Assembly (NCBI GenBank): GCA_900088475.1
Contig: FLMG01000941.1
Coordinates: 310,001 to 374,000, forward strand
Direction of reading: 5' to 3'
Length of the DNA stretch: 64,000 nucleotides
Source of the DNA: Hyphochytrium catenoides
Lineage: Eukaryota; Protista; Hyphochytriomycota
Under the pieces are notes generated by a model, which did not search any database, was not told the origin of the DNA, and was given only the letters and a program-made list of their open reading frames with translations. The position numbers and the translations under genes were made by a program. Positions within the stretch are counted from its first letter, which is position 1; each line of letters opens with the position of its first letter. This document shows, in pieces, positions 1 through 17,960 of this stretch.

Positions 1-857
1 CACCAGAAGTTGAAAGAATGTGAAAGCGTGCTTGTTAGCGATTTCTTCCTTGTCTACTGCCATGAAGAGTTCATGGAGAACGCCAGACAGTTCATATTTG
101 AGATCTACTGCAGGATACACCAGAAGATCGGCATCGGGTAAGTGTGGGCCTGGAGAGATACATACGGACGAGGCATGACTAGCGAGGCCTGAAGAAGTAT
201 GACTGCTTGTTGGGGAACGGTAGTCAACCTACATTTTTTGCTGAGCAATCGAGAGCTTTCATCGGGAACTGGAGGGAAGGCAGACAGCGGGCAACAGTAA
301 GAAAAACTGAGTCTCAATTTGACCTTTGACAGAATGTTAGCTGAGAAGCTGGGTATGGAGGAAGACCACGCTGAGAGATGGATAGTCGACCTCATTCGCG
401 CCGCACGGCTGGATGCCAAGATTGACTCACAATCAGGAGTCGTCATCATGGGTACACAATCAGTTAACATGTAAGTGGGAGCCACAGGACAAGAGAGGTA
501 GACGTACGGTATAGGAATAGGTATTTTTGTTGATTACGAAGCTCCGGGGAATTCAGTGACCTTAGGGACTGCTGACGAGCTCTCAACGTTTATCCTTTCT
601 TCTAAAACTGATGCACCGTACACTGATGTTCCGCTCCCTCGTTGTCCGCTTTCAGCCATCAGCAGGTGATTGAGAAGACGAAGGACCTGGTAGCGAGAAG
701 CCACGTCCTTGCCAACAATCTAGATGAGACCAATGAGTCTGGAGACCGCAAGAAGGGCGGCAGGAGAGACGATAGGGGAGACAGACACCGTGGAGACAGG
801 GACAACAGGGAGAGAGGAGGGCGGAGAGATAACAGGGAGAGGCGTGACAGATACTAA
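1..857 (+). CDS. EIF3E: Eukaryotic translation initiation factor 3 subunit E, 3' part (PCI domain); exons <1-137, 333-470, 656-857
   Basis: Spliced translation [87 protein letters not shown] matches the eIF3e/INT6 C-terminus. GT-AG introns 138-332 and 471-655 keep the frame; AATAAA at 1004-1009. Confidence 0.95.
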
Positions 858-1154
858 GCTCTTATAGGAAGCGCCACCTTAACGTCTCCTACTCTGTCCT
901 ACATGGTAGTCGTTCCAAAAGAGAAGGTGAAGTGACGAAGAGCAGGAGCAGTAAGCTTACATAGGAACAGCGTGCTGTGCCCTGAGGGTTTTCTATTGAA
1001 GCAAATAAACACGAAGACAATGACTGAATATTCATACTTAGAGTGCTTCCGCTTCACGTGCTTCCGCCTTCGATGTCTCCCTCTTGCTTGCGGCTTCGTT
1101 TTCCTGTTCTAGCGACTGATACGGGTCATAAGAGAAGCTGCCGAAGTTGGAAGT

Positions 1155-1287
1155 AGAAATGGACTCCAATCTTGCTGGCTGTCGTCACTGAATGCGCGAA
1201 GATGAATCGTGCGACAGTCACTCCTAGTAGGGTTCATTCATCTTCGCGCATTCAGTGACGACAACCAGCAAGATTGAGTCCATCTCT
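1155..1287. ncRNA. Long fold-back hairpin H1 (pre-miRNA-like)
   Basis: Arms 1159-1207 and 1236-1283 are reverse complements with one bulge and one C.A mismatch; perfect 28-bp run 1180-1207/1236-1263; 28-nt loop. The hairpin is seen in the sequence; RNA function is inferred. Confidence 0.55.
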
Positions 1288-1434
1288 GATACTGTTGAAT
1301 GTCTGTCTGGAAGAGGTACAGCAAGCTGCGAAAGGCGATATAAAGGAGGTAATCATTCACTCAATCAGCGACCTCCCCTCCTCCCTAAGGGTTCAATGCT
1401 CCTGTCACCCCTGAGCTCGCAGCCTACCCCTAAC

Positions 1435-1592
1435 CCCACTTTCTTACTTCAACGCCATCAGGCTATTCTTATTGGCATGGATCGCACGGCGACGGCCTCG
1501 AAATTGTGACTCGTGGAGCATTGCTTGATCCACTTCAATTTGTGATTCATGACAATGAGAATAGCTTGATGGCGTTGAAGTGAGAAAGTGGG
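1435..1592 (+). ncRNA. Long fold-back hairpin H2 (pre-miRNA-like)
   Basis: Ungapped 52-position stem 1435-1486/1541-1592; 5 of its 6 non-Watson-Crick positions are G-U wobbles on the + strand. Confidence 0.65.
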
Positions 1593-1607
1593 CAAGGTTT
1601 GCCCGAT

Positions 1608-1755
1608 GTCTCTTGAGCTCTTCGAATGCGCTGAACCCATACTTAAGCGCATTGGTCACAGAGACGAGAAATACAATCTCAAAGGATGGACGCAAAAGAC
1701 ATGCCTCTGTAACCAATGGACTTATGGGTTCAGCGCATTTGAAGAGCTCAGAGAC
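1608..1755 (+). ncRNA. Long fold-back hairpin H3 (pre-miRNA-like)
   Basis: Outer stem 1608-1641/1723-1755 (one bulge, one G-U) plus inner stem 1650-1663/1705-1718 (one C.A). Confidence 0.6.
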
Positions 1756-2011
1756 CTTGTTCAAGCATACACCTTAGATAGGTTGGCCTTGAATCTCTGC
1801 CGCTGTCATCCGCGAACCGCCACCATCCTGCTGCCTTGCGTGCGTGCGCACAACAGACGTCTGGCCCGCATCCAGCATATGACAGATTCACAACGTCACA
1901 GGGACATGTGGCGCAAGAGCAGAATCCAGTTGCCAGTTGCCTTCAGTTCTTTGTAAGTTTCTGGAAGCCCGGCACATCTCCTTTGTCACCTCTGATATAT
2001 GCCATAAAAAC

Positions 2012-2381
2012 TCCAATAGAGTCACTGGGATGTATCGCTTTCATCATTTGCTCTATCCTTCCGTTAAGGATGACAGCTAGGTCAACGGTTCCGTAGAATG
2101 CTAAGCTGACTCAAGTCACCGATCGAGTAGAAGGAGGGAGAGTCTTTGTCCTCTGTCTTCAGTAGCTCCCCCTCTTATCGCATTCCTCACTCAAGAGTGA
2201 TAGAATGCCAAACAAGGCGCGGCCATTGTTAAACTGCCAAGGAAACGTGGCTGTTGACAAGCCCCAACAGTCTACCTTCTGCCACATCTCAGAGGGCGAG
2301 GAACCTTCGTAGATCGCAAGCTCAACGGAAGGATAGAGCAAGTGATGAAAGAAGTACAAGTTGGTTTTAGAGCTATTTGGA
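2012..2381 (+). ncRNA. Long-loop fold-back hairpin H4 (pre-miRNA-like)
   Basis: Core stem 2031-2068/2321-2358 contains 28 contiguous pairs (2038-2065/2324-2351, one U-G); weaker extensions outward (2012-2019/2373-2381) and inward (about 2080-2092/2300-2316). Confidence 0.55.
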
Positions 2382-3714
2382 AGGACTGGAGGAGTGGCTC
2401 TTCTTGAAGTGAGCTTATGCTTTTGCCTCTTGCATTATGGGAGGTGATCTGCAGTTCATTTCTTCCCATCTTGGATAATGCTAGTGCGGACTCCCTCGAT
2501 ACCTGGATACAGCTCATCCTCTTTGCAGCTGCTCCTATTATTGGCCAGGTTACCCATCCCTGTCACCGTCAACACCAACAGAGGTATCTGTCACTGTGTC
2601 TTCTTTTAGAAAGCGCCAGACTTGACAATTTCAAGGAAGCAGCGCCAGATTATTTCTGCCAGGACCGTCTTCTTCGTGGTCATCACTCTATTGGTCGACC
2701 GACAGAGAGGAGAGGAGTGAATGGTGGCAGAAGGTCGCAACGCAGATCTTACGTCGTTTTAGTGCTGCTGGAAGGGATGGCGGCACGAACGATGGCACGT
2801 AACGCACCATCCTCGGTGTTTGACTGATTTCAGTCAGTTCTCTCCTCGCTCCACGTCACGAGGTCACTGTTGTCCATTATTCATTGATGGATGGAGGAGA
2901 GTCATCGCTCTTCTATTATAGATATAGCATGCGACGTGAGGCTGCTGGCTGCTGGCTGCTGATGTGTGTGAAGATGATGCCAATGCGTAGCAGGTACTGC
3001 ATCCTGACAAATCTATAATGAAGGGTTGTGCCACTACAGGAACTATTTTACCCTGATGCAACTATGCCCACCCACTCCTAATATAATGATCTACGTATAA
3101 GTTGGGTGGGAGTCTAGTGTGCCTCACCACTCCAGCTATGAAAGTTGAAAGATCGCACGATCCGGTGTCCTTCTTCATGGGCGAAATAGGGAAATAGTAG
3201 TACGAAGCAGCTCTTTTGAGAGGAGAAAACAGCCGTCACCATTTTAGACATAACTCCTCGACGGCTGGGAGTTAGAAGGTGCCCTTGAAATATGTTGCCC
3301 CTGAACTAAATGGCTAGCAGGACTCAAGACGGTTTGTCCATGGGGTGTCGTGGGAACAGACGCCACTCTTGACATACGCTGCAAAATAACCTAAGCTGGT
3401 TCTTCTTCTTGAATTTAGCCTCTTGCTGTTGTGTATGAAATCTCTCTTATGAACCGTTTTAGTACGACGAGTACGAAGAGATTATCGCTGTCATTGCCTG
3501 GTAATAACGCATGGCATCCTCAACTTCCTCTCTTTTGATGGGCGACAGCTGAGTCTGGTTGAGCTTGCAGATTGCAGATCACCGTATTCCGGACTATGCC
3601 CTTGGAGTTAGTTCTATCCAGAAGAGCGGTAACACTACTGTCAACAATGTACGTACTGTACTGAGTACAAATAATCTTGAAACTTTATACATTCGAGCCG
3701 ATTTGGAACCCGTC

Positions 3715-5291
3715 CTAACATATAGAGAATAGAAGAACATTGCCAAAGGACACGAAGGACAGAAGCGCCGAGATGAGAGAGAGGGAAGCCGTAGTCGTAG
3801 GACGAGGACTACTTGAAGAAGGCGTAGGCGCAGGATCCTGCGACGGTGGGTTATCTTGCAGAGAGTTGCACACAACCGTAGAGCCCTCAAAGAGAGGAGT
3901 GAGGACAGAGTTCAGATCCTCTGGTGCATTGGAGTCTGTCAGCGCCCTGTTTAAAGCATCCTTCACCGCGTCTTCCACCTGCACGACGGAGACAGGACAT
4001 GGAAACATGAAGACGTTTAGAGAAAGGCAACAACTTGGACAATTTCAGAGATTCTGCTGCTTGAAGCGCTGCTAATCCCAACACCAGCAAGGGATCAGAG
4101 GAAAAGGATCAGAGGGAAAGGAATGGCAAGCGAGATCCTGAGCCCTCTCTCGCTATACATAAAATTCTGTCAATGAAGAATCACGAGGTTTTCGTAACTA
4201 GGACGAAGGCAGCAGGAGAAGAGTGGCTCCTCCTTATCTCCTCGCTCTTGCCATCCAAATTCTCCTTACATTTTTCGTGATATCTTTGATCTTCAGGTCT
4301 ATTCCTGCGATAGTCTTCTTGATCACGAGATCCGGGGTAATTGTTACTTTCTCCACTTTGAGGCTTGTGAGGTGCGGGGAGGAAGGGGAGCAGCCCATCA
4401 CAATGTCAATTGTAAACTTTACCGGCCCCTGGCAGCAATAGTCGGTGCCGTCTGCTACCTAAGATGGACGACGATGATGGGATTAAGAAGGTGATGGGGG
4501 AATGGGAAGGGTGACATCAAAGAGGAGGAGATCTTCTGATCAACACAGAGTCAAGAAGCTGTTGTCTAGAGTCCTAAGACGCGAACGTTATGTCATAAGA
4601 AGTGGCAAAGTCCTGCAGCTGTGGTGTGAGGCCCTCTTACCGCCGCGCAAGCGCCTGTGAAAGGAACACATGCTTCAGCTCTCAAGTTCAGCGGCAATTC
4701 TTGGAAGGTAGCTGTAGCTCTAAGTGTGGATGGGGCAGTCGAAGTGGCCCCATCTGAAGTAGCGGCCGGCGGGATGACTTGACTATCCTCTAGCTTAAAG
4801 GTGTTGAGACCACCCACCCAGTAGGCGTATGCTCGATACGCTGAGTTCTTGTCCTCGTAAAGCAAACCCGTCTGGGAGAAGGTTGTGAAGGCAGCCGCGG
4901 GATTTGGTTAGAGACATCATGACTTCAGGACAACTCCAGCGGTGGACCGTAGACACAGAGAGCCGTAAGAAGTCTTATCGGAAAGGGTCTCAAAGCAGTG
5001 ATATAGCAGAGAAGAAGCCAGGCTCACCTCTTTGCAAGGAGTGGGAGGCGTGTCAGCAGTACAGTCGCCCACACTGGCTGGCAACTTCTGCAGGATTTGG
5101 TTCTCCAAAATGGTTCTGAATTGCGTGGCAACCGTCCCAACGGTGTCAGGGAAAGAAACATTGTTAGAGGCGCCTTCAGTCCTTCCGACTAGCAGGAGGC
5201 TAAAGAGCACTGCCAGACATATTGAGCCAAAGGGGAAAGACGCGGGACAGAAGCTAGTACGCTTCCTAGCAAGGCGCTGCCCAGTAACCAT
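3715..5291 (-). CDS. Secreted, probably GPI/C-terminally anchored protein of unknown function, about 315 aa; exons 5291-5028, 4871-4641, 4458-4270, 3978-3715
   Basis: Four exons join through phase-0 GT-AG introns into one 948-nt ORF. N-terminal hydrophobic signal (ICLAVLFSLLLVGRTEGA), several Cys, S/T/P-rich stalk and hydrophobic C-terminus (SLISALLSFVSFGNVLLFSIC). Confidence 0.8.
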
Positions 5292-6823
5292 TTTTTTTAA
5301 TCTTGTTGCTTCCCCACTACTTGGGTCTCTCCTTCGCGGTGGCACTTCTTCTAAGTGTTAGCACGGCGAGACTCTTCAAAAGTCGAGAGAAGGTTGATAA
5401 CTGGGCGGTGAGTGAGGTAAAGTCAGACTTTGGGGAGCTGCTGATATTTTGTCTTTGGTGGAAAAGTAAGAAGTGATGATGATGGCAAGAGAGGGACGAC
5501 ACTCCAGAAGCTCTAGCAGACGGGCGGTCGGGACGGAGGAAAGGATGACTACTTGAGCGTTTCCATTATTGATTATCCGTTCTATGCGGAAGACCTCTAA
5601 GAAAGTAGACCACAACTGACTATCTTCAAGAATAGCAGAAAGGATGGTCAAAGGCCAGTGGGAATCTAAAGGCGTTTAAAGTGGGCATAAGCTGCTGCAT
5701 TAACGCTCGGAGAGAGCAAGAACCTGCTGCTCTTCTTCCCCTTCTGTTCTTCAACGAAAGAGGAGGAGGTGACAAAGGTAGGCGCACAACAGCTGGATCA
5801 GTTGGGAGGAGGAGGGCGAACAAAGAGAGAAAAGAAGCTGAACTGCACCGCTCTATCATTCTCTTCCCTCTTCGGCTGTCCAGAAGGTTGACGATCCAGA
5901 GCTGCGGAGGAGGAAGAAGAACAAAGCGCAAAGAAGAAGACCGACCAGCGGCGCAAAAAGGGTCACAGAAGAAGGAGGCAGAGCTGGAGGAGCCAATTAT
6001 AGGAGATTCTATAGGGATACGAACACAAGGGCACAAGGAGCGCACAATCGTGCCCAGAAGACCAGGAAATCCAGCTGACAGATTGCAGGGCGAACCGTCC
6101 AAATTCATGGCCCACAACGGAGACAATGGAGGTCCAGGTTTGCTAGGGGGGTTACTGGAGGGACTAGTCTCTGTGCGCACTATTGTGCGAAAAGCTGGGT
6201 GGGAGGATTACATTGAGGGAAGCCTTTTTGTAGTACCATTTTATTCTACTGCACGTCAGGGTGGTACTAATGAGCGCACGCTGCGAACCCCGCCCCCCAT
6301 AGTACTAAATGTATGAGCTTCGACGAGTAAATCCGCACTATCTGACGCACTGTGGAGCGCCCTTATTATGTTATGGAGACATCATCAGAATCTGCAACAG
6401 ACCTGCAGCTCCAGCTTCTTGGCTCGCTTTTGCCATCATGAGATTATGAGAAGATGGAGCTTGTTGGTCATCGTGGTGATGATAGTGCTTCACTTTCATC
6501 TGCTCACCAGCAAAGGAGTTTCCTCTTCCATTGTCAACGCCTCCTCTGAGTGAACCATTCTCTTGGCAGGTGACACTAGTAGGTGGCCGTACTATTGGTC
6601 TAAGGACAATATTATCTCTTATCAGCTAGCTGGGCTGTTTGGAGGCTAAGCTTAGAGAAGACCTCTCTCGCTCACTCTTTTTGTCGCTCACTCTCGTCGT
6701 GCCTTGCTGCTGCCGCGTAACCTGCTGCATATTGAACGCGGCCCCAGTGACGGCATAGCATTTGGAGTCAACAAGCTCTCGAACACGTCACAGGGTCTGA
6801 AGGGCCGAAGCTTGTTGGGTGAT

Positions 6824-7798
6824 ATGAACAAAAAGGATGCCGGCCGTCATCACGATGCCCATGGAGATGGTCAATTGGATTTGCAGTCTCCTTCTTCTGC
6901 GGCGCCCCCAACCCTGTTGTCTCTCTGGCAACTGGAGTCCGTCGTGGTGGATGAAGAAGAGATAACAATGGACGGCTTGGTAGGCTTGCGATTTACCTTT
7001 GAGCGACTCAAGCAGAGCGAAGAGCAATGCATTCGTTCTCTTACTGCACCTATGGCAGGAGCTAAACCCTCCTCCGGAGAGTCAAGATTGTCACGTGTGC
7101 CTCCTCCTCTCCACCCTGACGATCCCGCAACTATGGTTTACCGGATGATTGTGTCCATGGGAGCTGGGTCAAGGCGGAACTTTAAAAAGCTGTGCATGGA
7201 GTACACCAATGAACTGCGTGACCAACAAGCAATATTGGTCGGCATCCCGAGTGGTCACTCATTCCGAGGGGACCAGCGGGACTTTTTATCTGTCCTCCCG
7301 CTCACTGGCTTCACGAGACATCCGATATCGCCCCCATACCTGAGAGTCCCTCATCCAAGCCTTGGACAAACAGATCTCTACTCGTTGATTGTGGAAGAGT
7401 ATACACCTCTCCTTACTCAAGAGTTCATATCCGCTCACCTAAAGGCTGATGTAGTGGCTAGGGTTTGTCCGCTACTTTTGACAGATCTCGGCGGCATGGG
7501 CACCTGGCACAACTTCAAAGCTCAACAGGGCTGGAGTGAGGTACTGATAGAAGTTGATGAGCAGAAAGTCATAATCTGTTATATGAAGCAGGACGGCGCT
7601 CTTAGCTTGGAGCCAGGCGCGATGCTTAATATTCTAGAGAGCCTTCGAGATTCAGACAGTGTTGGAACGTTCTTGGCCAAAGCGGAGGCCGTTCTACCCT
7701 GCTCCAGAGGCCAAGAAGAAGAGCTCTCTGTTTGTTTCTATCACTTCCAACGGCCTGCGCAGAGCAGCACCTTCGACATCACTTATTTCGCGGGATAG
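6824..7798 (+). CDS. Intronless hypothetical protein (open frame from 6704; first ATG 6824)
   Basis: 1.1-kb stop-free frame with globular-looking composition; no family recognised. Confidence 0.6.
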   Translation: MNKKDAGRHHDAHGDGQLDLQSPSSAAPPTLLSLWQLESVVVDEEEITMDGLVGLRFTFERLKQSEEQCIRSLTAPMAGAKPSSGESRLSRVPPPLHPDDPATMVYRMIVSMGAGSRRNFKKLCMEYTNELRDQQAILVGIPSGHSFRGDQRDFLSVLPLTGFTRHPISPPYLRVPHPSLGQTDLYSLIVEEYTPLLTQEFISAHLKADVVARVCPLLLTDLGGMGTWHNFKAQQGWSEVLIEVDEQKVIICYMKQDGALSLEPGAMLNILESLRDSDSVGTFLAKAEAVLPCSRGQEEELSVCFYHFQRPAQSSTFDITYFAG

Positions 7799-8452
7799 AA
7801 CGTTGCTCATAACTGGGCAGTGGTGGCTTTCTTTCTTGAATATCGCGTGATGGTTCCAATAACTTCCACAATTCCCTATACCGAACCAGCTCAGCTCACG
7901 AGTGCACATAGCATGTTACTGGAAGGTGCCCTAACAGAGCTTTTCCTAGTATCTGACGCCTCCTGCTGAGCTGGTTGAGCGAAGAGACGAGGGACACACC
8001 ATCACTCTGTACAATCTAAGAACAACCGTGAAAGTCCATGAAGCTTATCATTCTACGCACTCGGTGGCTGCCTCAAAGCTCTCCTCCGGCTCTTCCTGGT
8101 GATCAACAACTAAATAGAATAATGTAGACAAATGTGAGACAAGAAGAGAAGAAAGAAATCATAAGGTAGCTTTCCTGTTGGTTATCATGGGAAAAGGGGC
8201 TATTGGCAGCAGCAACAAGGGCTTGGGCTCATTGTATGCTTTATATTTCACATTTAACTGGCTAACAGAGTTCAGGGTATGTATGGTACGTCTCTCTGAC
8301 CCTTCGCCTCTACATGGACCAAAATTCTTACCTATCATCGCCAACCTTAGAAATGAGCGGCTAAGTATGGCATCGCTCAGCCGCATTGAATACATCGCGC
8401 CCTTCTCTCATATCGGCGTGCCTGTCCAACTTTCTTCTCCGTAGTGATGCAA

Positions 8453-16365: not shown

Positions 16366-17960
16366 TTATTTCATCTTCTCGGGCATCTTCTGGGTCTTCT
16401 TCCCTACAGTCTCCCCGAAGAAGAAGAGCGGCAGAGCAGCCAGGGCAGCTAGGAGCGAACATAGACAGCTAAATAGAGGAAGAAGAGCCCAGCCATTTGC
16501 CTCTATGAAGAACCCAAAGGGGGCCCCTGCCGCCGCCCCACCGAGCTGCCCCAAAAACTTGACTAGACCTCCGCCGGTCTCGCTGACACGAGGGTCGGCT
16601 AGCTCTCTAGCAAATAAACCGGCCAACATGTGAGGGGGAAATGAAAGGAAGCCAAGGCAGAAGTAGCAGAGCGAGAGAAGAGGAAGACCATCCAGCTGAG
16701 TTATTGCTAAGGAAAGAGGTGCCGCAATAAAAGAGAAAGAGACGATGATAGGTGCCCGTCTTCCTCCGTAGAGGTTGTCCGTGATCCATCCCGCTGCTAA
16801 ACTTCCTACAAAACCACCCATCTCGAGAGCAAAGAGACAGGTGGAGGCTTCAGACAGAGATAAGGCCTTGTTTTCGAATAGGAAAGACGGCGCCCAGTCA
16901 CTCAGGATACAGCGAAGAAGGGTAACGAAGAGGTAAGACAGGCCCAGCACCCACAGTTTCCAGTTTAAAAACACCTCCTTTTGAACGATAGCGCGAAAGT
17001 CTTTATCACCATCGCTGGGAGAAGAAGAAGGAGCAGTGACAGTCGGTCTCCTGTCCTTTTTACTCAGCTTCTTTTCCCCTACATCGTCCACCTCCGCACT
17101 ATCCAGCGTGTGGAAGGCGAAAAGAGCAAGAACGAGACAGATGCCAGCTGGCAGCCACATGGTCGAGTACTCTCCGAGGTAGGCAATCGCAGGCACAAGG
17201 ATGAGAGGGGAGAGAGCTGAGCCCGCGTTCTGTGAGGTGGAGAGCAGCCCATACCATTTTCCTCTCTCTTTCGGACTCTTGAAGTGCTTCATAAAGATCT
17301 TGGTCATGGCAGGCCAACCCACAGATTGAGCCAGACCATTGAGTCCCCAGACAAGGCTCATCACAGAGAGAGACGTAGACGAAAGAAGAAGAAAGTTACA
17401 TAGAGACGAGAGAGCTAGGCCAAGGCAAAAAATGACGTGAGGCTGCGACATATCCACCAGTGGGCCCGCTACAAAGAGTGCATGCGAGTTGGGGCAAGGT
17501 TGTTGAGCAGGGGGCAAAATTAGAGATCAGAGGACCTTAGCGGGACAAAAGAGCAAGGAGAAAGAGGTGAAGCTTCAACAAGGCTGATGGCCAAGATCAT
17601 TGGAGAGCGCCTGCCGGTCGATAATAGAGAGAGAAGAGATGGCTAAAGAGAGGTAGAGAACGAGAGGCATAAGGAAGAAGACCGAGAGGACGAGATATCG
17701 AACGACAAGACAGTAGGAAGCAACTGGGAAGACAATGCACAGTGCTCCTCACCAACGAGCTTGAAAAGCCCCATGCTTGTCTCTAGAGATGTCTGCACCA
17801 CAGCGACCTCTCCTCGGCTCATCTGCAGTCTCTTTGCGACGAGAGGCATCCAGAACCCATAGTTCTTCTTCGCAAGATAGTAGCCAACGTATCCCACATA
17901 CAGAGAGAAGAAGACCACATACCGCTTCGTAGGGGAAGATGAACTATCAGAAGTTGTCAT
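16366..17960 (-). CDS. MFS sugar-phosphate/glycerol-3-phosphate:Pi antiporter (UhpC/GlpT/SLC37 family); exons 17960-17753, 17468-16366
   Basis: YVGYVGYYLAKKNY, WGLNGLAQSVGWP, ERGKWYGLLSTSQNAG, EMGGFVGSLAAGWITD..GRR motifs; about 12 hydrophobic segments; in-frame GT-AG intron 17752-17469. Confidence 0.9.

Follow-up and report, generated by a model that had tools for sequence, protein, structure and literature searches.

The eIF3e locus and its downstream region

The stretch of DNA analysed here, a 64-kb window from the soil pseudofungus Hyphochytrium catenoides, opens on the plus strand within the gene for eIF3e. A phmmer search linked positions 1-138 to eIF3e proteins, and the last exons of the gene matched the Pfam domains PCI (319-474, E = 1.2e-10) and EIF3E_C (642-857, E = 2.1e-08). 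The introns measure 185-195 nt, beside a reported species mean of 208 bp; the organism is diploid with an SNP frequency of ~0.0275, and its 107-Mb Ray assembly, which draws on one HiSeq and two GAIIx lanes, is uncollapsed for ploidy (PMC5795050). Downstream of the stop codon, an AATAAA hexamer is a possible eIF3e poly(A) signal (Table 1).

No coding sequence could be recognised in the ~5.8 kb past eIF3e (860-6700), where the ORFs of 86-211 aa lack Pfam matches, and no tRNA was found in 1-8000. Together with the domain matches on the last eIF3e exons, this agrees with the first-pass annotation, which had placed its hairpins in non-coding DNA downstream of eIF3e. A non-coding stretch of ~5.8 kb is unusually long against the reported ~18,500 genes in 65.7 Mb. 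It is followed on the plus strand by an ORF of 364 aa (6704-7798) with no Pfam domain and no homologue among 5.8 billion proteins, which may be either an orphan gene or a piece of a longer spliced gene. Farther along the window, a minus-strand ORF of 383 aa (16366-17517) encodes a transporter domain of the Major Facilitator Superfamily (Pfam MFS_1, E = 1.6e-33).

Four long hairpins lie within 1.2 kb

An inverted-repeat search and RNA folding both recovered four fold-backs with long stems, H1-H4, at the coordinates and with the general description given in the first-pass annotation, including the 15 nt that separate H2 from H3. On the plus strand H1 forms a ~52-bp stem, interrupted by two A-C mismatches and a single bulge and closed by a 28-nt loop. 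The stem of H2 is 52 bp long with a 54-nt loop, while H3, whose fold gains slightly in stability on the minus strand, consists of an outer stem of ~33 bp and additional inner stems. H4, previously described as a core spanning 2031-2358, is a real fold-back, but true pairing is confined to the basal ~35 bp of the arms (2031-2065 with 2324-2358). These enclose an interior of ~260 nt with small hairpins of its own, and the arm mismatches in the distal part are mostly transversions. The H2-H3 spacer (1589-1605) lies inside its own 7-bp GC-rich hairpin (TGGGCAA-GGT-TTGCCCG), which was flagged by a terminator-like scan.

Table 1 Features at the eIF3e end of the window, with predicted RNA folds of the hairpins
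Feature	Position	Strand	Description	Predicted fold (interval; kcal/mol, z where given)
eIF3e, 3' part	1-857	+	exons 1-137, 333-470 and 656-857; stop codon 855-857; splice sites (GT/AG) read from the letters	
AATAAA	1004-1009	+	sole copy in 858-2500 on both strands (regex scan); ~150 nt 5' of H1	
H1	1155-1288	both strands fold	arms 1167-1207/1236-1276, 41 nt, 98% complementary (inverted-repeat search)	1155-1288; -88.4, z -16.1 (+); -96.3 (-)
H2	1435-1592	both strands fold	arms 1435-1486/1541-1592, 52 nt, 88% complementary (inverted-repeat search)	1430-1597; -98.1, z -15.2 (+); -76.9, z -9.4 (-)
H3	1608-1755	both strands fold	arms 1614-1641/1723-1750, 28 nt, 96% complementary (inverted-repeat search)	1608-1755; -81.8, z -12.6 (+); -86.1 (-)
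H4	2031-2358	both strands fold	arms 2031-2079/2310-2358, 49 nt, 80% complementary, 230 nt between	2020-2370; -131.5, z -6.6 (+); -129.4 (-)

Folding against shuffled sequences, a check that the earlier annotation had proposed, placed all four hairpins far below the shuffles on the plus strand (z from -6.6 to -16.1); in no case did a single shuffle match the fold energy. All four stems persisted when 1100-2400 was folded as one piece. When RNAfold was run over both strands of the 64 kb in a sliding frame of 160 nt, H1-H3 reached -84 to -88.6; the mean was -38.7 (sd 9.0), and the next best value was -71. The only other inverted repeats of at least 24 nt in the 64 kb were low-complexity purine/pyrimidine tracts. 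The density of fold-backs is thus four in 1.2 kb versus none in the remaining 62.8 kb, and the earlier remark that nothing comparable occurs elsewhere in the window held in both the inverted-repeat and the folding scan.

H1, H2 and H3 are 134, 158 and 148 nt long, respectively (134-168 nt as folded), with stems of ~50-55 bp and MFEI values of 1.19-1.34. In size and pairing they resemble precursors of the plant and oomycete type, as the first-pass annotation had suggested for the plant type. The hairpins offer the extensively paired stem, with room for a miRNA/miRNA* duplex, that is expected of a microRNA gene precursor. They likewise have the form of hairpin-RNA or inverted-repeat siRNA loci, each being a long inverted repeat at a single locus whose nearly perfect arms can pair into double-stranded RNA within one molecule.

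The hairpins are single-copy and mutually unrelated

The arms of H1-H4 are pairwise unrelated, their best local alignments being no better than those of shuffles. An 8-mer, GAATGCGC, is present in both H1 and H3; it was rejected as a shared motif, since 31 of 300 shuffles scored equally. Neither a second copy nor a complementary site of any hairpin arm was found within the 64 kb. Searches of the flanks for target-site duplications, with offsets of +/-4 nt, returned only chance matches of 3-5 nt. Both observations that the first-pass annotation had held against a MITE family, arms that differ from one hairpin to the next and the lack of target-site duplications, were thereby reproduced.

To estimate copy number, we summed the depth of Logan contigs with at least 80% likeness from two of the organism's DNA runs. 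Summed depth was 246 for H1, 298 for H2, 271 for H3 and 237-307 for H4 (at SNP sites), compared with 237-257 in the flanks. The small excess at the hairpins is due to contigs of the second haplotype, which have a depth of 80-90 beside 217. The hairpins are therefore single-copy and belong to no repeat family. In a rhizosphere metagenome of 2024, one 178-nt contig spans 1594-1771 with four differences (97.8% identity, same species). As it comprises H3 together with 14-16 nt of the same flanks, a wild conspecific carries H3 at this very locus. Three very small 2016 runs under the same species label contained nothing at this locus. Scans with arm patterns found no H3 in JGI metagenome contigs and no H1, H2 or H3 in viral contigs.

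Two hallmarks of MITEs and fold-back transposons, dispersed copies and flanking target-site duplications, were thus looked for and not found. Taken together, single-copy depth, unrelated arms, the lack of copies in the window and the lack of target-site duplications largely refute a MITE reading, which the earlier annotation had also argued against.

A dispersed repeat does occur farther downstream, at 3174-3366 (core ~3206-3365). It is present in ~20 copies, with a depth of 4750-5715 (3174-3340) against a baseline of ~240-257, and many loose contig ends fall at 3206/3263 and 3365/3367. The repeat, which may be a SINE- or MITE-like element, was also found in a rhizosphere metagenome contig, with 15 differences; searches against Rfam and for tRNAs gave no match.

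Haplotype differences and wobble pairs

Differences between the haplotypes were taken from the variants listed in the contig comparison, a small and partial sample. In H1, the other haplotype differs at 1215 and 1233 in the loop and at 1250 (A>T) in the stem; the latter breaks an A-U pair, with no compensating change among the variants listed. The 5' arm of H2 carries at least three variants: 1445 T>C, which turns a G-U into a G-C pair, 1473 T>A and 1484 G>C. The last two would break pairs unless compensated, and their partner sites are not among the variants listed. In H3, the variants lie in the inner part (1652, 1670 and a CAA insertion after 1713), and the outer stem has none among those listed. 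Two variants, at 2048 and 2078, fall in the 5' arm of H4. The flank at 858-1154 differs by ~2% between haplotypes and, among the variants listed in this small sample, the stems are not visibly spared relative to it.

The second haplotype also has a 36-nt deletion that starts at 1289, exactly at the 3' foot of H1 (1289-1326). Its counterpart of the H3-H4 gap (1776-2003) is heavily rearranged: it carries several short insertions, and 73 different letters take the place of a 59-nt segment. Indels seem to be concentrated beside the palindromes.

Wobble pairs gave an inconsistent strand signal. On the plus strand, five of the six non-Watson-Crick positions in the 52 bp of H2 are G-U and one is G-A, with no A-C, and the two strands differ by 21 kcal/mol. 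H1 has two A-C and no G-U on the plus strand, and H3 has three A-C versus one or two G-U; from this A-C excess, both pair better on the minus strand, and the 1652 variant in H3 would be a wobble on the minus strand only. The totals amount to 9:7 (p = 0.80), with heterogeneity among hairpins at p = 0.067 and H2 alone at p = 0.0625. A strand call from G-U asymmetry was rejected because the hairpins disagree and the difference is not significant. The wobble counts, weak as evidence, identify no transcribed strand and lend no support to a single transcript under RNA-level selection. RIP-like mutation as the source of the T-G pairs in H2 was likewise unsupported, as only two of the five lie in a CpA-to-TpA context.

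Searches for homologues and known families

All matches in Rfam 15 were sub-threshold: mir-31_2 at 38.8 bits (gathering score 97), MIR172 at 25 (70) and mir-7398 at 26.4 (44). We set these aside as generic hairpin matches far below the gathering scores; in Rfam 15, the hairpins belong to no described miRNA family. Four Logan contigs retrieved through eIF3e exon 1 (phmmer) had at most 75% exon identity, another gene downstream and no inverted repeats. Sixteen JGI metagenome contigs (L005-L020) retrieved through eIF3e exon 2 had at most 70% identity and no hairpins downstream. Searches with the spurious ORFs that cross the hairpins recovered neither a second haplotype nor a relative, and exact-match queries with proteins from ORFs in the window had no recorded counterpart.

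The small-RNA biology of stramenopiles has been worked out mainly in Phytophthora, brown algae and diatoms; for hyphochytrids, our literature search turned up no small-RNA paper. Phytophthora inverted repeats generally give rise to 21-nt small RNAs with a precision that ranges from miRNA-like to heterogeneous (Fahlgren et al. 2013, PMC3804510). In oomycetes, the sister group of hyphochytrids, one miRNA family is known, MIR8788, with foldbacks of 136-140 nt in Phytophthora (PMC3804510); oomycetes have two Dicer-like proteins (PMC4791657).

Discussion

Three explanations compete with a small-RNA source locus. The hairpins share with MITEs and fold-back transposons their terminal inverted repeats, their overall length (130-330 nt) and their location in intergenic, non-coding DNA. 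They could thus be relics of four different such elements inserted side by side: a size of 134-330 nt is MITE-like, H4 with its 35-bp arms and 260-nt interior is the most MITE-like of the four, and 1 kb farther downstream there is a true dispersed repeat. Unlike such elements, however, they have no family. Their contig depth in the two DNA runs (likeness of at least 80%) is that of a single copy, no further copy lies within 64 kb, target-site duplications are lacking and the arms are mutually unrelated. H1, whose arms are 98% complementary, would have to be a young element, yet one without sibling copies. The metagenome contig, moreover, shows H3 in the same flanks, and scans of the viral and JGI metagenome collections did not find the arm patterns. 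Transposon relics are for these reasons improbable. Still less probable, in our view, are cis-acting RNA structures of eIF3e, whether fail-safe terminators cut by RNase III/Dicer or 3'-UTR stability elements, which would yield no small RNAs acting in trans. The hairpins do lie directly 3' of a highly expressed housekeeping gene and follow the possible AATAAA signal at 1004, and RNase III-dependent termination at stem-loops, established in yeasts, provides a precedent. Four long and distinct hairpins nevertheless far exceed the need of such a role, none occurs downstream of eIF3e in the other loci retrieved, and in H1 and H3 it is the strand opposite eIF3e that gives the slightly better pairing.

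The main rival is that of neutral DNA palindromes. Local inverted duplication or replication template switching would have given rise to them in a stretch that is poor in genes and tolerates insertions, and they would now decay neutrally, untranscribed or functionless. Template switching yields perfect reverse-complement copies, and hence perfect hairpins, in a single mutational step, and such hairpins can seed new miRNA genes (PMC10710096, PMC8794818). The graded arm divergence, ~2% in H1, ~4% in H3 (outer stem), ~12% in H2 and ~20% in H4, resembles birth and decay, and the value for H1 is similar in magnitude to the 2.75% heterozygosity reported for H. catenoides (PMC5795050). SNPs hit the stems about as often as the flanks, with no compensation on the opposite arm among the variants listed; the strand signal is inconsistent; and the surrounding 5.8 kb hold a 20-fold repeat and no recognisable gene. 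This origin would, however, require four independent events confined to 1.2 kb, with the remaining 62.8 kb spared, and hence a hot spot. The stems here, at 41-52 nt, are long, and to our knowledge template switching is usually credited with shorter ones; they also come as four adjoining hairpins, three of which are alike in size and stem length. Finally, a transcribed duplex would be diced, so that functionlessness calls for silence right behind a housekeeping gene. We regard neutral palindromes as rather unlikely, although they carry real weight.

By analogy with the sister oomycetes, the cluster could well be a young hairpin-RNA or miRNA-like locus, a reading that we hold tentatively and at slightly less than an even chance. 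The extreme structures, their dense clustering and a shared geometry despite unrelated sequences favour a small-RNA source locus. Against it count the lack of stem sparing among the variants listed, the inconsistent wobble pairs, the sub-threshold Rfam matches and the hairpin-free eIF3e loci of distant organisms. As a small-RNA source, the locus would have been built from four independently formed, single-copy inverted duplications in non-coding DNA 0.3-1.5 kb past eIF3e, and each unit is predicted to fold into a nearly perfect RNA duplex of 35-55 bp on either strand. Read-through from eIF3e would supply the transcript, or the region would give rise to a non-coding RNA of its own; with the AATAAA 150 nt 5' of H1, read-through or a separate promoter would be needed. 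A Dicer-type RNase III would then cut the duplexes into small RNAs of 21-25 nt. Any transcript through the stems would be a Dicer substrate, and transcription is the uncertain step. Sharp miRNA/miRNA* pairs would be less likely products than imprecise, miRNA-like RNAs or a heterogeneous set of hairpin siRNAs, and stems of 50 bp with near-perfect pairing are more in keeping with hairpin-siRNA or young miRNA-like loci than with canonical miRNAs. A canonical polycistronic miRNA cluster, as a sub-case of the small-RNA reading, seems unlikely. We consider very improbable one polycistronic pri-transcript in a lineage-specific hyphochytrid miRNA system with Drosha-like/DGCR8-like processing, which would imply an independent or anciently shared Microprocessor-type pathway outside animals.

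Long near-perfect stems formed by inverted duplication are also typical of young plant MIRNA genes and hpRNA endo-siRNA loci, which are single-copy and lineage-specific and for which imprecise dicing is expected. Here, the arms have no similarity to any gene, as a would-be target, within the 64 kb. The closest comparison is with MIR8788 and pin-IR2758 of Phytophthora, both hosts being stramenopile pseudofungi of sister lineages (PMC3804510). The likeness of the MIR8788 foldbacks (136-140 nt) to H1-H3 (134-158 nt) is one of size only, and other Phytophthora inverted repeats are longer. Those inverted repeats produce ~21-nt RNAs, precise to heterogeneous, without an RNA-dependent RNA polymerase, whereas the hairpins described here are known from DNA alone. 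Unlike the MIR8788 entries, which are single foldbacks, some of them kilobases apart or on other scaffolds (PMC3804510), the present hairpins are four unrelated units in a cluster, and none matches an Rfam miRNA family above threshold. Because hairpin-derived 21-nt small RNAs, along with one miRNA family, are already known from the sister oomycetes (PMC3804510), the "undescribed lineage-specific miRNA system" of the first-pass annotation was an overstatement.

Four clean single-copy hairpins beside a housekeeping gene of a culturable organism make this a ready test locus. If no small RNAs are made, it would exemplify a palindrome-generating mutational hot spot. If they are made, it would be a further hairpin-derived locus of a kind known in oomycetes, plants and brown algae, and new for this lineage, and the arm divergence from 2% to 20% would represent a natural series in the birth and decay of miRNA-like genes.
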